Shown here one piece after another: positions 26,537 through 40,120 of a DNA stretch of 64,000 nucleotides; positions within the stretch are counted from its first letter, which is position 1, and the number at the start of each line of letters is the position of its first letter. The notes below the pieces were generated by a model. That model did not search any database. It had not been told where the DNA came from and worked only from the letters and a program-made list of their open reading frames with translations. This DNA comes from Klebsormidium nitens (lineage: Eukaryota; Plantae; Klebsormidiophyceae), in assembly GCA_000708835.1 (NCBI GenBank), contig DF237065.1:62001-126000 (forward strand), in the 5' to 3' direction. Position numbers and translations under genes: made by a program.

Positions 26537-26895
26537 GTCCCCTGCACCGTCGATTCGTACTGGCCTTGGCCGGTTTGAATTTTGAATGGAAGAGCAGCTG
26601 CAACTTGCAAATTTCAAGGTCCAACTGGTCCCGCCCAGTCACTGTCACAGCCAGAGTGGGTACGGTAGGACTCTAGGAGTCTAGGACTACGGTAGGAGGA
26701 TGAAATCTGAAGCAATTCCTGAATTCTGAGCTTCCAAAGGCACGCCGCACGAACTTCGCTGGAGAGGTCAAACGGAGCTGGAACCTTGTAACCACCTGGT
26801 ACTGCAATCAGGAACCCAGGAAAGTGCCTTGAAGTTGATCAGGGGATTGGGACAGGCAATGTAGCTGTTGATCAACCTGAGAGTGCTGCGCTGCC

Positions 26896-29800
26896 ATGAA
26901 ACCTTTGTCACCCATACCGGAGCTCGATGAGATGGAAGCTGCAGAAGAAGCATCTGTGCTTCCTGCGTCAAAGAAGCAGAAGGCGGATGGTGGGTGCACA
27001 GCAAGCGGGGTGTGGAAAGGTTCCACACTGTCTCTGTCCAGTACTGGTCGACCTTCTTTGGGTGGTCGTCATCCGGCCCCAGGCCTCAGTCTGAGAAGCG
27101 CCAGTCTTGCAGGCGAATCATCCAGAAGCTGCACAGGAGTTAAGCCTTCACTTCCTGCCAGCAGCAGAAGGGTGCCGGTTGGCAAGGAGAATCAGAGCTC
27201 TGAGCAGAACCTACAAGGTGTGAGGAACAGCTATTGCCGCTGGAGAGGCCTAGTCCCCTTGTCCAATCCAACCAGGCGGCTGGCCCTGCTGCTAGCAGAC
27301 GGCGTTCAGGAAGACAGCAAGCGCAGCGGACAGCGGGGCTGCTCAAGCAGTCAGAAGGGACTCGCAGAGCAGCCAGTGAGGCCACTCGAACCTCACAACT
27401 CAATAGGGGGCCTTCTATGACGGAGAAGGAAGCTCTGAACCCACAGCCTGTCAAAGCATCCACCGCTGCTGTGAGTGGTCCCCCTCTGACAGAGCGCAGC
27501 GGTCCGCTGGCAGAGGCAGACCCGACAGGAGACTCACTGCTTGAGACAGCTGACGGGACAGGGGCTGCTCAAAGCAATTGGGAGAGAGAGCCGCTCGAAG
27601 AAGGAGAGCGGCCTGAGGAGTACAAGGAAGAGCAGCTCTGCCTGTGGGACCGCTTCGGTGGACAAGACATCCGCATCTTCGTTCCGCGCAGTCTCTATTG
27701 TCAAGGTAAGGGCACAGTCATTGGCTCATGCATTTTACCATAGTGCTTCTTGAGTGGGCAACAGCGTTGGCGATCTCTCTGCTGACTAACCCAAAATGCA
27801 GACAAGAGGACACAAGGAGGATTTTCATTGTGTGTCTCATTCATGACAGCTCTGACTGACTCTGTCTCACAGCATGTTCAATGACTCCTGACTCCTTGAC
27901 TGAAGATACGTCAACTGTTCTTTTCGGGTTCCCCTTCCCAGTAACTGGGATGGTGTAGATTCTTGCGGGCATGTCTCTTGGGTGAAACCAGCCTATCATA
28001 CCTGATGTCTCCATGTCATGTCGTGCAGAGACTGAACCCACCGAAGAGGTGCTCACTCAACGCGTCTCAAAAGCCCGCCCTGTCCTACCTGATCTGAGCA
28101 AGGCGATTGGGGCACGTTCGGTGCAACGGAGCACAAAGTATACGCTTGGCCAGGTTAGCCCCACCCTCATCTGCAGCGACAGGATCAACGGGTACACTTG
28201 ATTCTAGGCACTGTCTGTAGTGCACTTTCCGCGTTGCTTGTCAGCAGGCGCTGCGAGGAGAATTGCTGAAGTTCCACCAGTCACAAAGCTGCGCGCTCCT
28301 GTCCTGCAGATAAATGTCGGGGACAAGAAGGTGGACTTGACATCGTTGAAGCAAGGAGACGAGTTCCTCGGAACATTTGGCAAACCTCAGCATGCGACAG
28401 CTGCGAGTCAGCTTAGAGCTCATCTGAAGGATGTCCCGAGAAAGCTGAGAGAGTGAGTATGTGGGCGATCCTCAGGCAACCTTTATTTGCAAATAGGTAT
28501 GGCACCATGCTACATATGCAGGTGGATCCTTTGCACGTGTCTTTCAAGGGTCCTGGATGCTCTTCACAGGGAGAAGAAGTGTTCTTGAGGTGTCTGCCTG
28601 AGTGTGCAGAAGGAGCTGCGCATAGATGGCCTTTGCAGGGAGCTGTTCACGTTGCTGTAAAGCCTTGGAAGCAATTCTGATGATGAGCACCTTTGTCCAG
28701 GCTTTGACGCCAAGCATGGCTGAGTCTTATCTGCAAAGTGGCTGGCCTACCAACCTCTTCCTCATTCTCATCACAAACGGTTCACCAGATCCAATCTGAA
28801 TAAGAAAACACAACATCTTTTCCTTCTTGCAGGGGGCTGCTACCCTCAGAAGGGCCAGAAGAGGAGCCGGACCCAACGGTCGTCATCAAAATGAGCAAGG
28901 ACTGCATAAAGCTCAGAGAGAGGATCCAGACGTTCGGCATCACCGAACCAGACACCCCCGTGGACTTCAAGAGGCAGATCGAAGACAAGACTCAGTACAT
29001 TGAGGCAAAAAGCACCAGGTTCTGCGCGGTGGGGAAGCCAGGAAGCCGCAAGAGCCTTACCTGTAACAGGTACGAGTCTTCAATGAGATAACAGTGCACA
29101 TCTGTCACCCTTTTCAGGTTTTCTTTATTCTATTTGCAGGATAGCAAGGGCAGCATATACAAGGAGGAGTTGACTTGGACATGTTTGGACCAGATTTAAA
29201 ACGACCACCTCGTTTTGCGCCTCTTTTTACAATTGCAAGGTGTCTAGCTGTCAATGGAATCGGATGAATTTTTCCTCCGTGCTATAAAAGTAGGCACATA
29301 TGCTTCGAATAACGAAACCAAGCTGTCAATCCCTGGCAGATGCGACATCCCAAAGGTGCTTTCGCATTCTGGCAACATTGACGGCAGAGATTGTGTTGTT
29401 ACAGTCACTAGGTGCGGTCTTCGTTTCTAACTGTTCCCTTACTTATCTTTCAAAGGCATGCTTTGCATATCTGAGAAGCTGGCCCTCAATAGCACCGCTC
29501 CTGAAGTCTTTATTTCCTACAGGCTTGCTGGCTTTCCTGGTGAGAGGGGTCCTTTCTTCTATTGCCCCGAAACCCGAGACCACGGTACAAAAATCACAAC
29601 CTCGATCCTCAAGACAGCTGAGCCTGGGCTACACGTCCGTACACTTCTGCGTCGGAAGAGCGTGTACGAGCAGCTTGTGGAAAGGAGGTTCAAGGCTGGG
29701 AGTATCTCGCCAGAAGAGCTGCGAGATAACTATCACTGCAAGGTCATGGAAGGGCCTGAGGGCAAGGTAAGGTGGCAACTAAGACGATATACGAAGTGGT

Positions 29801-32800
29801 TGACAGGAAGAGATATGAGTGCAGGCTCAAAGGCCGTTTGAGACACATAACGTGACTAAATCCAGTAGTCTCTTTAAATAACCCAAAAGGCTTTATATTG
29901 GTAGTCGAGGTCCTGATGCATTTACTTGAGGCAACTCGTCTAGGCCATTCACTGAAGCAGATCGGGATTGGCTGCAGCCGTGTCTCTTGCGAGGATGCAG
30001 CACTTGGAAATGCTTCAGCCGTTTCTAATACAGGACTGACCCACTCTCCCCTCTCTTAACTTGAGTTTAAGTGCTGGCTTAAACTTTGGCTGCGTTTTCA
30101 CAGGTGCGATGGTCCTCCCCGGACCAGCCAATGGCGGTTCGTCCAATCGAGGAAGTGATTCCTGGCGTGAACCTGCTCGTCGATCCTGTGGAAGGGGCAC
30201 ATATGTACTCGAGCGGCCTCAGCAACTACACTCCAGCTGAGCAGCTCATGATTGCAGAGGTCGAAATGTCTTCCAACGCGTGGCCAGGCTTGGATGAGGG
30301 TCAGAAGCTAGTGGACGTAAGTCATCTCAAATTCGAAACGAGACCGCTATGGCTCTGTCATTATCCTACTCCTCATTCATCAAGTTTCCAGGTCATTCTG
30401 CGCAAGCGAGGGACCTATCTGGTGAAAACGGGCGATTGCCAATCCCTTCTCAGCAACCACTTTGTATGGGTTTGCAACTCCGCTCTCAGTCCTCAGCAAG
30501 CAGTTTGCAGGAATAGTGTTTTGGAGTTGAAAAGTTTACAAAGATGCATCCTTCTCAACGAATGCATGTCAGCGTTTGATCCCCGGAATCGGGCTCAATT
30601 GCTCAGTTGCTGATTCTGCTGTGCAATGCTCCCTGGTCCAATGTCACCATTACAAAGCTCTTTCTTTGGTTGCAGTGCGTTGGCTTCCTCGAGGCGCAAG
30701 AGGGGCAGTCAGACTTCAGGAGTGTGACGGACGACATCGTTCGTGAGGACGTCAAGGGCGCTAACGTCATCATACCCTGTACCAGTGACCGTGTGCGCAC
30801 AGAGGAAGACGGCAACCTTCTCGCTAAGCTGGGCCTCTTCGATGGCACACCGGACACCTTCCCCATCTTAGTCTGTCCCGACTTGCCGAGCGTCCTTTCG
30901 TCACTGGAGGTGAGGGCTGTCCTGTTCGTGACCCATTTGGTCGGACACAAAGTGCGCAAGATGTGCACCGGATTCTTCCCCTCAACCGCTTGTGCGAGGT
31001 TCGTGAGTTTTTGGGTTCGTGAAACAGATGTTCCAAAGAATCCTTGGTACTATCATAGGCAAGCTTCATAGAAAACAACACTTTTCCTAATGTGAATTCT
31101 TTGCTTAGAATGCGGTCACTGATTCCGAAGGGTGAGTTGACCTCTATTTTGTGTTCTTCCAGAAAGTGCACGATGACAACGTGAACGCGTTAGCGGGCGC
31201 CTTCAAGAAACCGGAGCAGCTTGTGGCCCGAAATGTTCCAAACGTCCAGCATCTCATCCAATTGCAAGAGCCCATCATCCAGCATATCAGCGAGAATCTC
31301 TTTGTCATGCAGCCAGTCACGGCCCTTAACAGCCACGTAAGTCTTGCTGCCATCAAGGTTCAAGGAAGATTAACAGAGTCTCTAGGCTCCCCTGATCGTC
31401 CAATAACCTCTTATCATAAGCAAGAAGCCTGTTGGACGTCTAGCGTCCTTACATTACCTCGGAGGCTACTACGTAAAGGAGCATTCATGACCAGAGTCGT
31501 TCGAATATAGGGCCTTACTGCAGCTCCTATTAGTAGCTTTCTGAGATGTTGCTTTGCTGACGATGGCCTGCTTCGTCTCGGCAGAGGAGTTTTGATCTCA
31601 TAAGAGCTGTGGCCTGCTGCTCCGAAGAAAGTTGATCTTTTGGATACAAGTTGAGATGCTTCTCGTGCAGGAACTGAAGGAGGACATCGCCAAGATGGTC
31701 AATAAGGCCCAGGTGGCTGTGCTCGTGCAGAGCATCTCCATCTGGATAACCTGGACTCTGATGAAGCTCAGAGCTTTCAAAGCGCGCTCGGTGAGGAAGT
31801 CCGTTCATCCGAGCGCTCGGGAATCCTTACTCTGTTGAAATTTTTGAAGGCTGTGCTGCTTCTTGCCCTGTTTATGCAGCTCTTGACAAACATGGGTTGC
31901 GGAGAAATTGGATCAAGAACGCGTCATGTCTGCATTGAGGCATCCGCCGAACAAGCACCAGCCTTTGCGTGCAGGCCGCCCCCGTCGCTCCTCGAGCTGA
32001 AGGAGCTACGTACGAGCTCAAGTGCGAGAAGAAGATTCGAGACGGGATGGGCGCATTCACAACCCAATTTGCGTGACTTTCCTCAATTCTGATTGGTGTT
32101 AGTTGCGCTCTTCATCCATGTCATTCGCTGCTTGTTATCTGCTAGCACCAGCATTTCAATGATGTTGTGACTTGCCTCCTGATTCAAAAGCAATAAAGAG
32201 CACAACTGTTTTGCGCTTCCACCCTCCGCCGTCCATTCGAGTCTCTCCCCTTCCAGGGAGACGATCGTTGGCCTTGAAGTGACTGCAAGCGAGCTCCTGG
32301 AGGAAGCAAGCAGGACTTACTTCGGAAACGTCTGGATTCAGTTGGAGGCTGAGGGAATTGAGGACATGCAGCAAGCGTTCGAGCACTTGCTGGAGAGGGG
32401 TGCTGTGTCCTCCGATAGCAATATCTACCAGTTCCTTTTCCAGGTAAGTAATCGTGAATTCGTCAAGTGTCTGGAGTTTTTTTTGTCAGATTAGATTTGT
32501 AGACCATCTTCGTTTGAGCTCGCATCTGTCAAGGGGCTTCGATGAAGCACTACCTGCCTTTCTACATGTGTCTTTCAAATGTCGCTAAGCTTCATCAAAG
32601 CCTCTGGACTCTGTTTCTCAATTCTGCGCAGCCTTCTCGATTTCGTATCTAGAGCTAGGAAATCGCCGTTCAGACTTAACGAGCTTTTGCTGCACAGGTC
32701 TTCGACAACGTCATTGCGAGGGGTCGCAAAGATCTGGTCGAGCACCAGAGTGCAATCCTAAAGGCTCTGATTGAGCTCAGGGACGGAAAGAAGAAGGTAC

Positions 32801-35800
32801 GTAGTATGGCGAAGGACATGCTCACCTGGGTACTCGATTGGCCTGGACGGGAGGAGTTGAGCAACGCTACTTGGATTGATCTCATCTCGTTGTGTACGGC
32901 CTTGAGGGATGACGATTGGCAAGTCATAAGAGCAAGGGCATTTCCAATCCTTATGACACAGTAATGGTACAGTGTCTCTTTATCCGCAGGACCTAGGAAG
33001 TGAGGCAGACGCCTCCCTCTTGCAAGCAGAAACGGCAGGCAAGCTAGCAGTCGAGAGAGCTGCACAGGGCCTGAAAAATGGCCCGAGCGCCATGGAGGAC
33101 GCAATCCAGTGGACGGACTCCAATCGTGAGTGCGCCCAGTCAGGGAGGGGGTGCGACATTCGCGAGTACATCAACAAAGTTTGCAAGGATGCAGTGAGGG
33201 AAGCTCTGACGAAACCAAGTAAGTCTTTCCGTTCTTATTGGTTCGTGAAAAGCAGAAAAGGCAATCGGTTCTCTTGTTTCCTGCACTTGGACACCTCTTC
33301 TTTGTCGGGTTATAGGGTCTTCCCTTAATAAGTCGGAGTATGCCTTAGAGCTTGGTAACCCTACTCTTCGTTCCAGCTTCGTGACGGCTGTCCTTACGAC
33401 CTAGTGCTCATCCAAGCACTTGTAAAGGCTCTATGTAAGCATGGACAGAAACAAAGCAGCATTCAAGCAGATCTCGCGCGTAATATTCTCTTCCACTCTT
33501 AACCGATCTTCTGGTTATCTTCCAGTCCAGGATGAGGCCGAAGACCACTTCGTCTCTATTCTGAAGAGGTGTCTCTTGGAGTCGTCCGGGCGCACGCGCT
33601 TGGGGCTAGTCAAGCCCCTCGTCTTGAGAATCCTGGAGTGGGCTGAGACTACCTACACCGACTTCCTGATAGAACACTGCAAGAGAAGCCTCGAGATGCT
33701 GAAACCAGATTTGGATGCAAAGCGACCCGTCGGAGGAGGACAGTTGCAGGGCGTCGTGAGCGATCTTGCTGCGGTGGCAAAGGAGGTGAAGGAGCAAGCT
33801 ATCAAGGTCTCGAACATGTAAGAGCTCTCTCTTTGCGCGTGTGGCTGATTAGCTGAGTTCTCCGTTTGGCCGTCCTTTAGCTGCAGTCGCTTCTTCCCTC
33901 TTCACCGTTGAGCTTACACCCTGCTGTCTGTCAAGCTGCCAGATTCACCAACAGTCGACTTTGGTTGCGAATCACTCTTTTAACAAGAAGCGGGTTGAGC
34001 AAACGGTTACCATTGTTGTTCTTCTTTCACTCATAAGGAGACCTAAAGTGCTTACTTTGGCCATAGCGCAACCTGTGCGGAAACCAGCCTTTCGACTGTG
34101 CGGTTCGATTTGTCAAACTCCATTAGGCTTTGCTTTCTCTTGCTTCCAATGTCCAGAGGAACTACTTAACAAGCTTGTTCTAGAAAAGTTCGATGCACGA
34201 GTGTTCAGATTCAGTCTTCATGCAGAAAAGTAGCAACTGTTGTTCCCAGGGCGACACACAAGAAGGCGTACGAGGAGCAGGCACTCCCCAAGCCACTCAT
34301 AAGGAAGCCACAGACGAGGGACATTGCTCAGGGCAGGTACGGTTCACCTTAGGCAGCAAAAGTAGAAACAGACCTTGGGAGGACCTACTCTTGTCCTCCA
34401 AAGCTTGCCAAGACCATTTTTGAAGCTTTCCTCATGCTTTTCATTGCTGAGAGACTTGGACGTTTCTATCCGGATGTGTGCGCATATATCCAAAAGCTTC
34501 GCGAAACACTTCGTGCTTTTGGTCCCAGACTTAGGTATGTGCACATGCTGGTGACTTCTCGAGTGCAGCGGCCATTGACAAAATGGCCCTAGGAACCAGA
34601 TTTTCTGCACTCTGATGTTCCCAACCGCTAGTCACTCTAGGCGTCCATTGCTGAGCTCAATGTCGATTTCTGATCTGAGTGCACTCATCTGCAGTGTCAA
34701 ACTCCTCCCGGAGGTCGACTTCCAGCAGATCGAGGTCGTCAAAGTTCCTGGCCTGGAGATCGCCCTCTCGGATCTGGTGCCGGAGCCAGCAGCGATGGGA
34801 AAGCAGGTTGTGACCGGGAGGATGGAGGTCGGTGAAGATCTGCTTCCGATCGTTGACGCATACAACCGCGCCACCACCAACGCAGTGAAGGAGCGCGGTG
34901 CTGCCGGGCCTAAGACCACTGACCCTCCACGTGTCGTCTTCTACCCGTCGGAGGTGAGTAGAAGCTAGCTCTTGAGCTTCGGAACACACGAAACGAAACA
35001 AAGAGAGCATACGATGGCTCACCGTTCCGTGCATCCTTCGATTTTAGTGTTCACTTCTTCCAAGACAACCGTTGCTGACTTGCTGTTGATTTGTGCCTGA
35101 AGTTGTGTTCTTTCCGCTTCTGTAGCTTCAACCGGGGCAGAGGGACAGCAGCGTCCGGTTTGACTTCCGTCCGAGCCATCCACAGGGCATCGGTCGCACC
35201 ATGTGGAGCCCCATTTCTTATGTCGTATGTCGGGAGAGCGAGGTGAGATGGTCGGTGACACCATACACGTGCTGGCATTAGGGATCTGGGCAGCAAAAGT
35301 GCATGAGCACTTCGACAAACCAGCAACTCTTGAACTTGTGTGCTGCACTTACCCGTGCTCTGCCTGCAAAGTTTAGCTCGTTGTCTCCGTTCATGTCAGT
35401 TCTCTGTTTTTCAAAAATTCAAGGTTTGTCATTCGAATTCCTTGCTTCATGAAAAGCTCAGCGTAGCTTCTGACAAATGCCTCACTTGACGGTCCCTTCT
35501 GCTTCAGGCTGAGAACCACCGCCGTCTCCTAAACGGAGTCGAGGGCACTACCCTTGTCACCGTCCCCAACGACAGCAAGAGGCACGTGTACTACTCGGCT
35601 GCTCAAATCGTGTACTGGCTCCTGCACAAGCCAGACTTGGAGGAGGGCTACGGCAGCTATTTCCTCATGCCGAACAACGTCGAGGAGATTATCGAGGTCT
35701 CCCCGAAGTCGTTTGCGACACAAGGGTCCAGTCTCCAGCGGTGGAGCACCTTCGCGCAGCAGGCAAGCTTGTAACTCTATCGTTCTCTTGGAGCAGACGA

Positions 35801-38800
35801 CTTACAAGTCTGCTTAAGTTTGTCCTTGATGAGCTTGCAATGTCGAGGGGTGCTCCTTCCGTCCCGCTGCTCTGTCCGTAAAGTCGGCCTAGAAGTCGAG
35901 CTGTCTCACGTACGGCTGAAGCTTTCGAAAGATTAGATGCTCGACTACAGCTGGTCTACACTTTGATGTTACGCATTGTTTAACAGGTTGCTTTAGCTTG
36001 TCGATTACTGGCTGGATATTTGTCGACGATCCCGCTTTTGGCATTGAATCAGACGTCAAGTCGCATAGGGGTGATTGAAATAACAATGACAAAGGGAAGC
36101 ATGAGTGCAGATTTTCGATCATGAGCGACCCCTGTCTCCGTACGAGCACAAACTTGTGGACCTCGTCTCTTTCATAGAACCCTATCTAGACTGAGACCCT
36201 GGCGAATCTGTCAGGTACTGCATCAAGAGCGACAGCGGAAGGGGAGGGCCTTGCTGGCCTACATGTCGGTGCTGTATGGGCCCTTCCATCTGGCGCTGAT
36301 GGAGGCGCTGAACGCAGACAATAGCGGGGAGATCGTAAAGGTCATGGGGGCATTCGGGGAGCTCTTCCCTCCAAACCACAAGCGCCTAACCTTCCCGAAG
36401 TGAGTGCTGTCCTGACAAAAGGGGTCCCTTTTCTCCACCTGAGTCAAGTCAATATTTTGTCCCAGCTCTGAACTGCAAACATTCTCTGTCAAAACGATGG
36501 TCACGACAACACAATATGTGGGGTGCAGTACTTGGAAATAGGCACAATCTTCTGAAGAAAAGGAACCTTGTTAGCTGCTGGATTGCTACGTACACGCCAA
36601 ATCCCGGAGTTTTTCTTCATTCTGATTGCAGTGCATCTCGTAGTTTGGATCGAAAAAGTGTGAAGCCTGACAGGCGTGGTTGCCTGAATTGTGAGGGGTC
36701 GGTGCAAGGGAATGCTCAAAACGTACAAAGAATCCTCTACCAGATAGAATGTTGACTTCTCACGAGTTCCTTTGCTTTTTCCCGGGTCAGCGATTGAACC
36801 TTCGCAGGCTCCATCTCTATAGCGCTCTTTCCGTAAAAGCTTTTCAAGACCCAGCAAAACCACTTTTCTTGTGTGACTTCAGGTCCGAGATAGAGGACCT
36901 GGTGAGAACGTGCAAGGGCCCCCATACACGGGAGCTGCTGCAGAAGATGCTGCAGCATCTTGAGACTACTGTGGGCGTGAGCTGCCACCTGGCTCGCTTT
37001 GGAACGCAGACGTTAATGTCGGACGCTTATCCGGACAACGTTTTCCAGCCAAGGACAGCAGCGCCCGCGACCACCTTCTGGCTTGTCGACGCCCGCGGAA
37101 CGGCGGTCGTCTCGCCCCTCCACGTGGCAGGCTTCAACCAGAGCCCTCACGAGGACTTCCTCCCGTGCGCACGGCGTTTGTACAAGCCGTTCGACGCACT
37201 CGGATGGCGCAGCCTGGCAACCCCGACCTACCACTGGAGGCAACTGCGGCAAACCTACAACAAACCCGAGAGCGGTAAGACATCGTGGAGGATTGCGTAC
37301 CATCAGCTTCTGAAGATAAGGGCTTGAAGACTTTGACGGATTGAGGCCCTATTCTCATTAGCGGCGGACGGCACAACAATTTTTAATCTAAATCTTCTGA
37401 TTGGCTCCGGCGAATGTGGAAAACTTCTACCGCGCTTCCACTAGCAGTTGTGCCGGCGGAACTCGATAAAAAAATGCTTACGTCAGCGGCACAAAAATAT
37501 TAAAAAGTTCGACCCTTGTGCCCCCTCGGGTCGAACTCCTATTTTTCTGTGCCGGGCAACCACGTGGTTGAACTGGCCACTCACAGCCCGAGGTGCTAGA
37601 TTCTGGCGCGCCAGGGCTGCAAGTTGCAACGTAGTGATGACTGTGCACAGGAGGCAAGCACAGCAGCTGTAGGATAGCCTGTAGGGTACCTAGCTGGTCT
37701 TTTGCCTGCTCGGGGTTTAGGGTTTTGCATGCCAGCGTGGCAATTCCCGATTTTGTACCAGGACTTGTGCCGTGGTGTGATTTCACTTGCGGCCGGCACA
37801 ACTTCACGCTTTTCGCTTTTTTGGGCACTTCCGGGCAAGTTCCGGGCAAAAAAGGATTTATTAATTGTTGTGCCGTCCGCCGCCAATGAGAACAGAGCCT
37901 GAAACCACTACAGCAGAATCTCGAGCACTGCCAGATTAGCAGATTGTTGAAGTTGGTCGCTTTTACCCTCGAGGTTGCGGGGTACTACTTGCGCCAAGAT
38001 CTGATGGCAGGTTAATGCTCGAGGCCGCTAGAAGATCCAGAGCTGCTCGAGCAAATCGCGGTGCCCTCTCCTTCCTACACTCTGTCTTTGTCAAGGGCCA
38101 GTGTTCGGATCTCTCCTTTCCTTCCGCAGGTTTCCTCTACAAGCAACCCGTTGACGCCCTGAGCTTGACGAAGATTGAGAAGGCTTTGAGAAATCAGCCT
38201 ACTCTCAAGAGCTTCTCCAAACCGGAGGGCGCTCTTGCTCTAGAGGCTAAGCTGCCCGCTTCGAGGACGGTGTTGCCCTCCGCCGAGAAGCTGCGTGACT
38301 CGGGCGTGCGGGGCAACGGCCTTGCTCTCGCTATCGTGTCATCTGCGCTCAAACAACAACCTCGCACGCTGAGGAGTCAGGTCGGCGCTCATGTGAAGAA
38401 GAAGTACGCGTCCCTCAAGCTTCCAAGGGTGACCTCGCCAGCAGAGGCCGGGCAGTGGGCAAACGGTGAGCGGTTCTTTGAAGTCCGCATAGACTGGTTG
38501 TACTCTAGGCAGCACCTCCTGTTTGCGTTGGCTTAAAGGAGTCAGCTCCTTTGCCGCTGTTCAAAAGGGGCTCCTTTCACCATCTCGCTTGCGTTCAGCT
38601 GTCCTTCTACGGGACTCCTAATACACTCGCCCTGCGAAAGCATATTCGAAGTGCTGCCTTTCCTTCTTTAGCGAGACTTCTTGTGTTTAACCGTCGCGGT
38701 CATCGTCCGCCGAATTTCAGTGTGCGCGAAACTGCTGATCTCGTTTTCCCGGGCTGATGAAAAGTGAGACACTTGGTGCAGTAGGTTCGAATGGAGCACA

Positions 38801-39115
38801 TCTGCAGGTGGTCCCTGCTTTCTACAAAGCTTCTGAAGCCCATACAGCCGCTGCTTTAATGCTCAATGTAACGGTTGACTCTTTTAATTTGCAGAGCACG
38901 CGCAGGAGGGCTCAGGCCTGGAGCTCGACTTCGTGCATGCGGCAGCCAGCTGCAAGGGCATCAACTTGGTGGTCGCTCTCGTGAACAAGGCCGGGCAGCT
39001 TCGGTACTACCAGGCCATTGGCGATGACAAGAAGCCGGAGGTGTCGTATGTGTTCGGTTTTGCAGACGGCGTTTACAGCCCTATCGGCTGGCGGAAGGAC
39101 GAGGACGATGAGTAG
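26896..39115 (+). CDS. Uncharacterised ~1,450-1,550 aa multidomain protein: dynamin-like GTPase, helical region, TAGT/GREB1-like GT-A fold, OTU-like fold (all with degenerate catalytic motifs)
   Basis: 21 phase-consistent exons: (27417 or upstream)-27705, 28029-28153, 28310-28452, 28833-29069, 29523-29766, 30104-30316, 30676-30909, 31163-31336, 31671-31790, 31975-32072, 32257-32443, 32698-32796, 32990-33218, 33526-33817, 34250-34336, 34695-34953, 35508-35762, 36215-36399, 36883-37274, 38130-38465, 38895-39115. The true start (26896 versus 27417) is uncertain. The gene is well supported; the domain names are inferred from motifs. Confidence 0.8.
37345..37899. mobile_element. PIF/Harbinger-type MITE (~555 bp) in an intron of the multidomain gene
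   Basis: TIR GGCCCTATTCTCATTAGCGGCGGACGGCACAACAATT versus AATTGTTGTGCCGTCCGCCGCCAATGAGAACAGAGCC (3 mismatches). TGA on both flanks (TNA-type TSD). Confidence 0.88.
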
Positions 39116-40120
39116 GTCGTGCCCAGGAGGAGTTGTGGTTGCTCAGAACAGTATCTGTAACTGAGCGGTTGTAAATTACGTCGGTTAGGGTCAGCTAAGT
39201 GTCCTTGTGGGTGTCGGTCACGTCTACCGCGCTGGTTTCGAGAGAGAAGCCTCGCAGTTGAAGACTGACGTCAGAACTGATCAGCGGTCGGTCTCACTTA
39301 TTGCAAGGGGCTTGTCTAGTATGTACATTACCTTAAATGAACACTCGAGAAGATGTTTGTCAGGCTAAAAAATAGCGTCCTCCTACACCCTCAAGCACCG
39401 ACTTTACAGTCTCGATGCAAGATGCAACCCTGCCCTATCACGTCCTCTGATTCAGAGAATGCACGTACCTATGTGCGTTTTCTTACCAATCTGGACTATG
39501 CATATCCAATTAGCTCAAATACATGCATGCGCTCACCAAATATACTCATTCTTGTGCCGCTAATGCAACGTGACCAGGACATATTCTAGATACACGCACC
39601 ATGTTTTCAATTAACACACGGAACAGCTTGTTGACGCACGTTTTGTGCAGCTATCGCGGTGATGTGCCAGCTTTGAATACAGAGACTCACTGACATATCA
39701 TGCGCACAAGCTTAGTATAGGTATAGGTGCTTATAAGGATCGATCGAGTGCAATGATCTGCCACATGTGGCATGATTGTCGTTTACCGTACCTATACTGT
39801 CCACACATGACGTACATGATTGACTAAGTGCATGCGCTGAAGGTGTCGGATTGAAGAGCATTATATAGAGCGTGCGTGCTACGTGACCACGACGGAATTT
39901 GTTGCTCAGCTTGCGTCATTCGACTCCAGAGCTCGTGAAATCTAGCGATCAAAAGCCTTTCTGAAGCAATTTTATATAACCGATTTGTGATGCGTTGACT
40001 TGCTAACAGGGGTACCATTCAATCTACACTATTATAAACGTTGATGTAAGACGTCACGGATCCAAGTCTACCGTCAACATGCTGACCGCAACGTAAGCGC
40101 ATACCCAGGTGGCCCTTCTT

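Follow-up and report, generated by a model that had tools for sequence, protein, structure and literature searches.

KFL_001160110 of Klebsormidium nitens, a transcribed gene of a rare eukaryotic family with a Walker-A-type motif and an OTU-like C-terminus

Which domains are encoded by a gene spread over 12 kb of an algal genome whose product resembles almost no known protein, and is this gene maintained? The question is raised by the window analysed here, a stretch of 64,000 nucleotides from the contig DF237065.1 of Klebsormidium nitens, which contains the gene KFL_001160110. A preliminary description, made from the sequence alone, presented its product as an orphan chaining a dynamin-like GTPase, a glycosyltransferase fold of the TAGT/GREB1 type and an OTU fold, all with broken active sites. 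The present analysis directly supports the gene structure, the transcription, a collinear conservation in a relative, purifying selection on the C-terminus, the presence of a Walker-A-type motif and a likeness to OTU domains, while the middle domain is no longer read as a glycosyltransferase. On balance, and by a modest preference, we regard KFL_001160110 as a true gene, transcribed and kept by selection, which belongs to a eukaryotic family that is rare and uncharacterised and encodes a modular protein with a P-loop and a dead OTU domain that would act as a non-catalytic scaffold or sensor.

The spliced exons amount to 4,554 nt and give a product of 1,517 amino acids (aa) identical letter for letter to a database protein, P0001, which corresponds to K. 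nitens KFL_001160110 and is labelled “hypothetical protein” in the word-indexed protein database. The longest exon (36884-37273), used as a HMMER query in an exhaustive search, also retrieved P0001 at 100% identity. The limits and the size (~1,500 aa) first given for this gene were thus correct, as was its multi-exon nature, but it is composed of 23 exons and not 21 (Table 1). The motifs pointed out at that time (GKPGSRKS, DCVG, GNGLA and DGVYSPIGW) are all present. The region around the gene is eukaryotic, with a + strand rich in short open stretches. No Rfam match was found within 26-40 kb of the window, scans of the exons, the whole protein, its domain-sized parts and the exons of its relatives with Pfam, NCBIfam and PADLOC gave nothing above noise, and PDB sequence searches with the protein and two family profiles returned no relevant match.

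Sequence of the gene is contained in 20 RNA-labelled sequencing runs. Its splicing was read from contigs of four RNA runs belonging to three studies, aligned over 26890-32889 and 32960-38959; such contigs carry no molecule counts, and minor variants are dropped from them. They are spliced at 20 of the 22 annotated introns (19 GT-AG and one GC-AG, after a permitted shift of the cut). One contig begins 171 nt upstream of 26890, and another one, of 5,084 nt, runs from 27310 to beyond 38464, reaching about 479 nt past this position. Individual contigs of 4.9-5.1 kb begin in the 5' region and reach the last exons, so that the P-loop, middle and OTU-like regions belong to one transcription unit; all the proposed domains are crossed by one continuous transcript, not by two or more. 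The previous statement that the exons join in phase without stops holds for the annotated splice form, but not for the RNA contigs, which retain two frame-breaking introns.

A word-indexed search of 5.8 billion proteins with the whole protein and with residues 235-565 found no annotated homologue and recovered only the protein itself. The exhaustive search with exon 21 yielded three genuine clusters, all short fragments (P0003, P0005 and P0006); P0002, P0004, P0007 and P0008 were rejected as relatives, being tandem-repeat proteins that match a short low-complexity stretch of this exon (TAAPATTF..LVDA..G). The contigs bearing the fragments are genomic and come from three other sources with homologues: a metagenome contig of 150 kb from JGI (L002+L006), and two sets of SRA contigs, namely Logan assemblies of four runs (L001; L003-L005). 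The first of these is the sole relative contig covering the whole gene. According to tblastn it contains a collinear homologue from about residue 38 to 1516 of P0001, with a conserved domain order, 30-64% identity per exon and alignment blocks that start and stop near the exon limits of K. nitens, while L001 and L003 display homology to the last three or four exons. Only input sets that aligned correctly were kept for multiple alignments, MAFFT having misplaced many exon fragments. Over the last three exons, the ratio of nonsynonymous to synonymous substitution rates (dN/dS) is 0.14 between L002 and L001 (dS about 1) and 0.44 between L002 and L003 (dS 0.10). These values, not near 1, therefore place the gene, and in the first place its C-terminus, under purifying selection. 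The term of “orphan” remains appropriate with regard to annotated proteins, but not to the collinear homologue and the further C-terminal ones (L001, L003-L005): the family is rare, yet not restricted to a single species. No synteny was found between the flanks in the window and the homologous contig, and scans of metagenome and viral contig collections with the last exon gave pattern matches and no relatives.

Towards the N-terminus, the best-conserved block of exon 5 is VGKPGS[R/A]KSLTCNR, where the second P-loop glycine is replaced by Arg in K. nitens and by Ala in L006, departing from the canonical GxxxxGK[ST]. An hhalign panel of 19 E. coli proteins, including 10 Walker-A proteins and seven non-P-loop controls, matched positions 65-87 of the query to the Walker A of seven of the ten (scores 22.8-37.9, P 2e-4 to 0.03; MnmE 37.9, Era 33.6, PhnC 29.6, RdcA 27.3, PhnK 26.3, HflX 24.5 and RecF 22.8); the seven controls scored <=22.7, at positions scattered elsewhere in the query. 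Using a two-species alignment, the similarity to RdcA/CrfC, of the dynamin family, extends over a strand, the P-loop, a helix and the switch-I Thr (60-61 columns, P=0.0096), and when the columns of the dynamin profile were shuffled 200 times, the score always fell short of the real one (maximum 23.5 vs 26.7), this profile being shallow because the CrfC homologue search gave close enterobacterial sequences only. No alignment extends beyond about 60 columns, and over the P-loop the alignments to ABC ATPases are nearly as good. A possible G3 remnant, DCVG (residues 423-426), spans the 30316/30676 junction, with D.VG at the same exon junction of the relative, and a possible G4 remnant, CTSD (residues 458-461), faces CCGD, where the Asp alone is kept; both are placed by neither profile nor structure.

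The profile comparisons thus argue for a Walker-A strand-loop-helix unit, with TRAFAC GTPases as the best fit. The proposal of an N-terminal GTPase is upheld as far as the P-loop is concerned, but its dynamin affiliation is not, Era and MnmE scoring higher; “dynamin-like” is unproven since no Pfam match to Dynamin_N or any other GTPase profile was obtained at E<=10 and the AlphaFold2 model of residues 190-620, built on a shallow alignment, was unusable (mean predicted local distance difference test, pLDDT, of 38.8), Foldseek returning junk with it. The K. nitens module resembles TRAFAC GTPases (Era, MnmE and RdcA/CrfC) by the alignment of its strand, P-loop and helix to their Walker A, continued through the switch-I Thr in RdcA/CrfC, and it is followed by a long helical region as in large GTPases. 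Unlike them, it lacks the second glycine, matches no GTPase profile, displays about 160 residues between G1 and the DxxG candidate, and has no [NT]KxD G4 motif either in K. nitens or in the L006 homologue.

The helical region that follows shares about 32% identity with the L006 homologue where alignable, and Pfam gave only sub-threshold HEAT and RAI16-like matches to it. Better conserved (39-49% identity), the alpha/beta domain located next contains in exon 21 alone 42 columns invariant among four sequences, including H1237, R1240, D1249, D1271 and H1282. It matched nothing in Pfam (to E<=10), NCBIfam or PADLOC, nothing relevant in the PDB profile search and nothing by tblastn against phages. 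Its best ESM Atlas score, 0.54, is well under the level reached by shuffled proteins, and the only confident piece of the AlphaFold model is a strand-helix-strand-helix unit (residues 1047-1095). Having no match in Pfam, PDB sequences and ESM Atlas, these ~400 conserved residues may therefore represent a new domain.

The C-terminal ~130 residues resemble OTU deubiquitinases (PF02338) in language-model features and predicted fold. ESM Atlas features of residues 1375-1517 scored 0.92, 0.90 and 0.90 against clusters carrying PF02338, and 91 of the 100 nearest named clusters were OTU; with the 588-residue C-terminal half as query, OTU accounted for all 44 named matches. The AlphaFold model of residues 925-1517, also from a shallow alignment, was poor (mean pLDDT 44.9), its C-terminus forming four helices then a four-stranded sheet (pLDDT 50-67). 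With this model, OTU domains fill most of the top 50 Foldseek matches in the PDB (best E=0.038, prob 0.89-0.94), including OTUD3, a rice OTUB-like protein, Cezanne, OTUD1, nairovirus vOTUs and otubains, and in VIA many OTU chains aligned, over 85-95 residues each, with the stretch 1395-1514 (model residues 471-590). Taken together, the three methods make an OTU-like fold likely. The conserved blocks GNGLA, LRxQV, W..EGS.LEL..V.A....IN and [VIT]YSP also follow the order of the OTU ones, and the last exon is 63-65% identical in the relatives. The positions of the Cys-box (G-[DN]-C-L) and the His-box (H-[YF]) are those which we take from the motif order of the OTU signature, and not from a residue-level superposition. 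On this correspondence, GNGLA brings a Gly to the nucleophile position in all four members (K. nitens, L001, L002 and L003), and DG[VIT]YSP a Val, Ile or Thr to that of the His, also in 4/4, which suggests that the inactivation is old and maintained. The initial description of an OTU-like C-terminus with both catalytic positions replaced is thereby borne out, by three independent and individually weak lines and by motif conservation in four members. Unlike typical OTU domains, the K. nitens domain is too divergent for the Pfam model and, preceded by a P-loop module, forms the end of a protein of 1,500 residues, a layout of which no description was found.

Several points weigh against this assignment and would fit another small alpha+beta fold that merely resembles OTU in a poor model. 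Each OTU line is individually weak, all structural scores being below formal significance and the pLDDT of the region low; at E<=10, Pfam gave no OTU match, and hence none above the PF02338 threshold, whether the query was the complete protein, its C-terminal part, its exons or those of the relatives, the family profile found no OTU among PDB sequences, and Foldseek against AFDB Swiss-Prot returned junk with the C-terminal model. Sequence-embedding features, 3Di alignment and rigid-body alignment nevertheless converge on OTU, with conserved blocks in the order of its signature, and we hold a different fold to be quite unlikely. For the middle domain, a divergent protein-kinase-like (PKL) fold was considered, with [IM]x-D-x-[YF]-P-[DE]-[NT] as its putative catalytic loop and the invariant hhLVDA as a putative DFG-like metal site. 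Nearly all the named Atlas matches shown for residues 1040-1335 are kinase-like (Kinase-PolyVal, RIO1, APH, Kdo, WaaY, YrbL), two invariant Asp lie 22 residues apart, and the unit at residues 1047-1095 is compatible with beta3-alphaC-beta4; the Atlas scores (<=0.54) are however far under noise level, the motif Asn is a Thr in one member, the PKL kinases WaaY and WaaP reached P=0.32-0.62 in hhalign, and no kinase was matched in Pfam, in the PDB profile search or by Foldseek. The kinase-like reading is a weak lead only, and a fold of this kind is highly improbable. The full fusion initially proposed, an inactivated chain of a dynamin-like GTPase, a TAGT/GREB1-type GT-A domain and an OTU domain, is the reading we consider least probable. 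Its P-loop and OTU parts are supported, the N-terminal module aligns in hhalign over its greatest length with RdcA/CrfC (61 columns, through switch I), and LVDAR of K. nitens is LVDAH in three relatives, where a beta-strand followed by a DxH metal site could be read, although equating it with DxD needs a fold assignment. The likeness to GREB1/TAGT proteins (base-J-type) is limited to a large multidomain make-up with a conserved domain placed before the C-terminus, and to a hydrophobic strand then D-A-[HR]. The glycosyltransferase part is however unsupported, since no such signal came from Pfam (E<=10), Atlas features, phage tblastn, or Foldseek and VIA (the weak structural model limiting the fold test for GT-A), and six enzymes encoded by the E. 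coli waa cluster (two GT-A, two GT-B and two kinase-like) did no better in hhalign than unrelated controls (P=0.13-0.62, with P=0.13-0.14 for the GT-A enzymes WaaJ and WaaO). Moreover, MnmE and Era outscore the dynamin protein, and in GREB1 the glycosyltransferase domain is preceded by a Zn-binding domain and a permuted, inactive SF2 helicase, not by a GTPase, and there is no OTU (PMC7968844).

Another alternative concerns the transcript. The locus could mainly produce a truncated P-loop protein of ~630 residues, the full-length fusion being a minor isoform or an annotation construct. Against full-length expression, contigs of all four RNA runs retain the 5' intron and intron 11, while the other 20 introns are removed. 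For an ordinary intron (29070-29522), unspliced sequence is confined to a separate contig with about 1.5% of the depth; the low-depth contigs at 29045-29442 (2.8-3.4 vs about 180-190) cover part of this intron and correspond to ordinary pre-mRNA. By this comparison, the retained forms of the two frame-breaking introns are probably abundant. With intron 11 retained, a stop codon follows residue 632 directly, and with the 5' intron retained, the open reading frame (ORF) from ATG 26896 has 174 codons and ends at 27420, its TGA overlapping the next start of the main frame, ATG 27417 (ATGA); its product has no Pfam match. However, the contigs omit minor variants and give no counts, intron 11 has a pyrimidine tract and canonical ends and its removal restores the frame, a downstream ORF on an mRNA retaining it would be out of reach of scanning ribosomes, and the C-terminal exons are under purifying selection in the relatives. 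Past intron 11, about 885 more codons are open and spliced in phase across 11 confirmed introns; a productive form with this intron removed must therefore exist, and we judge predominant truncation unlikely. The 5' intron also restores the frame when removed, linking that of the annotated start codon to the main one.

In the favoured reading, a modular protein with a degenerate P-loop and a dead OTU domain, five parts would succeed one another: a poorly conserved N-terminal tail with a KKQK motif, of low complexity in the relative; a putative Walker-A P-loop NTPase-like module without its second glycine (GKPGS[R/A]KS); a predicted helical middle region; a conserved alpha/beta domain with no assigned fold and an invariant H/R/D/D/H set; and a C-terminal domain of predicted OTU fold, where every known member appears to have other residues in place of the nucleophile Cys and the general-base His. 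Judging from these domain states, the function is most likely that of a non-catalytic scaffold binding ubiquitin or a ubiquitin-like modifier (UBL) with a nucleotide-binding remnant. The OTU module would be a pseudo-deubiquitinase that binds ubiquitin, a UBL or a partner protein and does not cleave it, and nucleotide binding at the degenerate P-loop may still govern the conformation of this scaffold or sensor. Catalytically dead deubiquitinase folds acting as scaffolds or allosteric activators form an established class (PMC10919355), with which the apparent OTU inactivation fits. A bolder version, in which the family would be an undescribed nucleotide-gated ubiquitin/UBL sensor of streptophyte-type algae whose middle domain is a new catalytic fold acting on the substrate shown by the dead OTU, seems very unlikely. 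The claim of an undescribed architecture stands insofar as no described counterpart of the combination was found, but the recognisable parts are each of a known kind and not clearly a new system. If true, the favoured reading would extend the pseudo-deubiquitinases by an OTU fold that diverged strongly, lost its activity long ago and is coupled to a degenerate P-loop module. In practical terms the gene is of modest value: it offers structural biologists and biochemists a target in this model streptophyte alga, and it exemplifies a seemingly dominant RNA form that retains two frame-breaking introns; the finding alone does not open a long-standing question.

Table 1. Features of KFL_001160110 and their positions in the window
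Feature	Position	Strand	Basis or remark
Annotated coding sequence KFL_001160110 (P0001, 1,517 aa, 23 exons)	26896-39115	+	exact splice to P0001
Exons 1-6	26896-26989, 27493-27705, 28029-28153, 28310-28452, 28833-29069, 29523-29766	+	
Exons 7-12	30104-30316, 30676-30909, 31163-31336, 31671-31790, 31975-32072, 32257-32443	+	
Exons 13-18	32698-32796, 32990-33218, 33526-33817, 34250-34336, 34695-34953, 35126-35242	+	
Exons 19-23	35508-35762, 36215-36399, 36883-37274, 38130-38465, 38895-39115	+	
Transcribed span	26719-39400	+	5' end inferred from contig; 3' end approximate
Annotated 5' intron, GT..AG, 503 nt	26990-27492	+	unspliced in every RNA contig
Annotated intron 11, GTGACT..TTCCAG, 184 nt	32073-32256	+	retained in contigs of all four RNA runs
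Sole GC-AG intron of the gene	35763-36214	+	RNA contigs
P-loop NTPase-like region (about residues 240-565; exons 5-9 and start of exon 10)	28975-31688	+	hhalign; fold unconfirmed
Non-canonical Walker A / G1 motif GKPGSRKS (residues 259-266)	29032-29055	+	GKPGSAKS in relative L006
Mostly helical, weakly conserved region (about residues 566-930)	31689-34695	+	low-confidence models
Conserved alpha/beta domain, no fold assignment (about residues 931-1335)	34696-38137	+	alignment of relatives
OTU-like domain (about residues 1385-1517; exons 22-23)	38285-39112	+	Atlas, Foldseek, VIA
GNGLA at the place of the OTU Cys-box	38312-38326	+	motif correspondence
DGVYSPIGW at the place of the OTU His-box	39065-39091	+	motif correspondence

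The 5' end of the gene differs between the two species. The first exon of the homologue is one ORF of 463 codons (L006 4957-6348), starting with an N-terminal LPAAKKQK (LPASKKQK in K. nitens) followed by about 370 low-complexity residues without counterpart in K. nitens, where the 5' intron sits at the place of this stretch. The annotated start is favoured because of this similar motif.

The 855-nt intron 37275-38129 contains a segment of 569 bp (37332-37900) with terminal inverted repeats of ~44 bp (about 89-92% complementary), which looks like an insertion of the miniature inverted-repeat transposable element (MITE) type. Near-identical copies of this segment (3-4 mismatches and one 1-nt deletion at 37502) lie inside other transcripts of 2.2-3.7 kb, which were found in all four RNA runs and were more abundant than the KFL_001160110 contigs in two of them.

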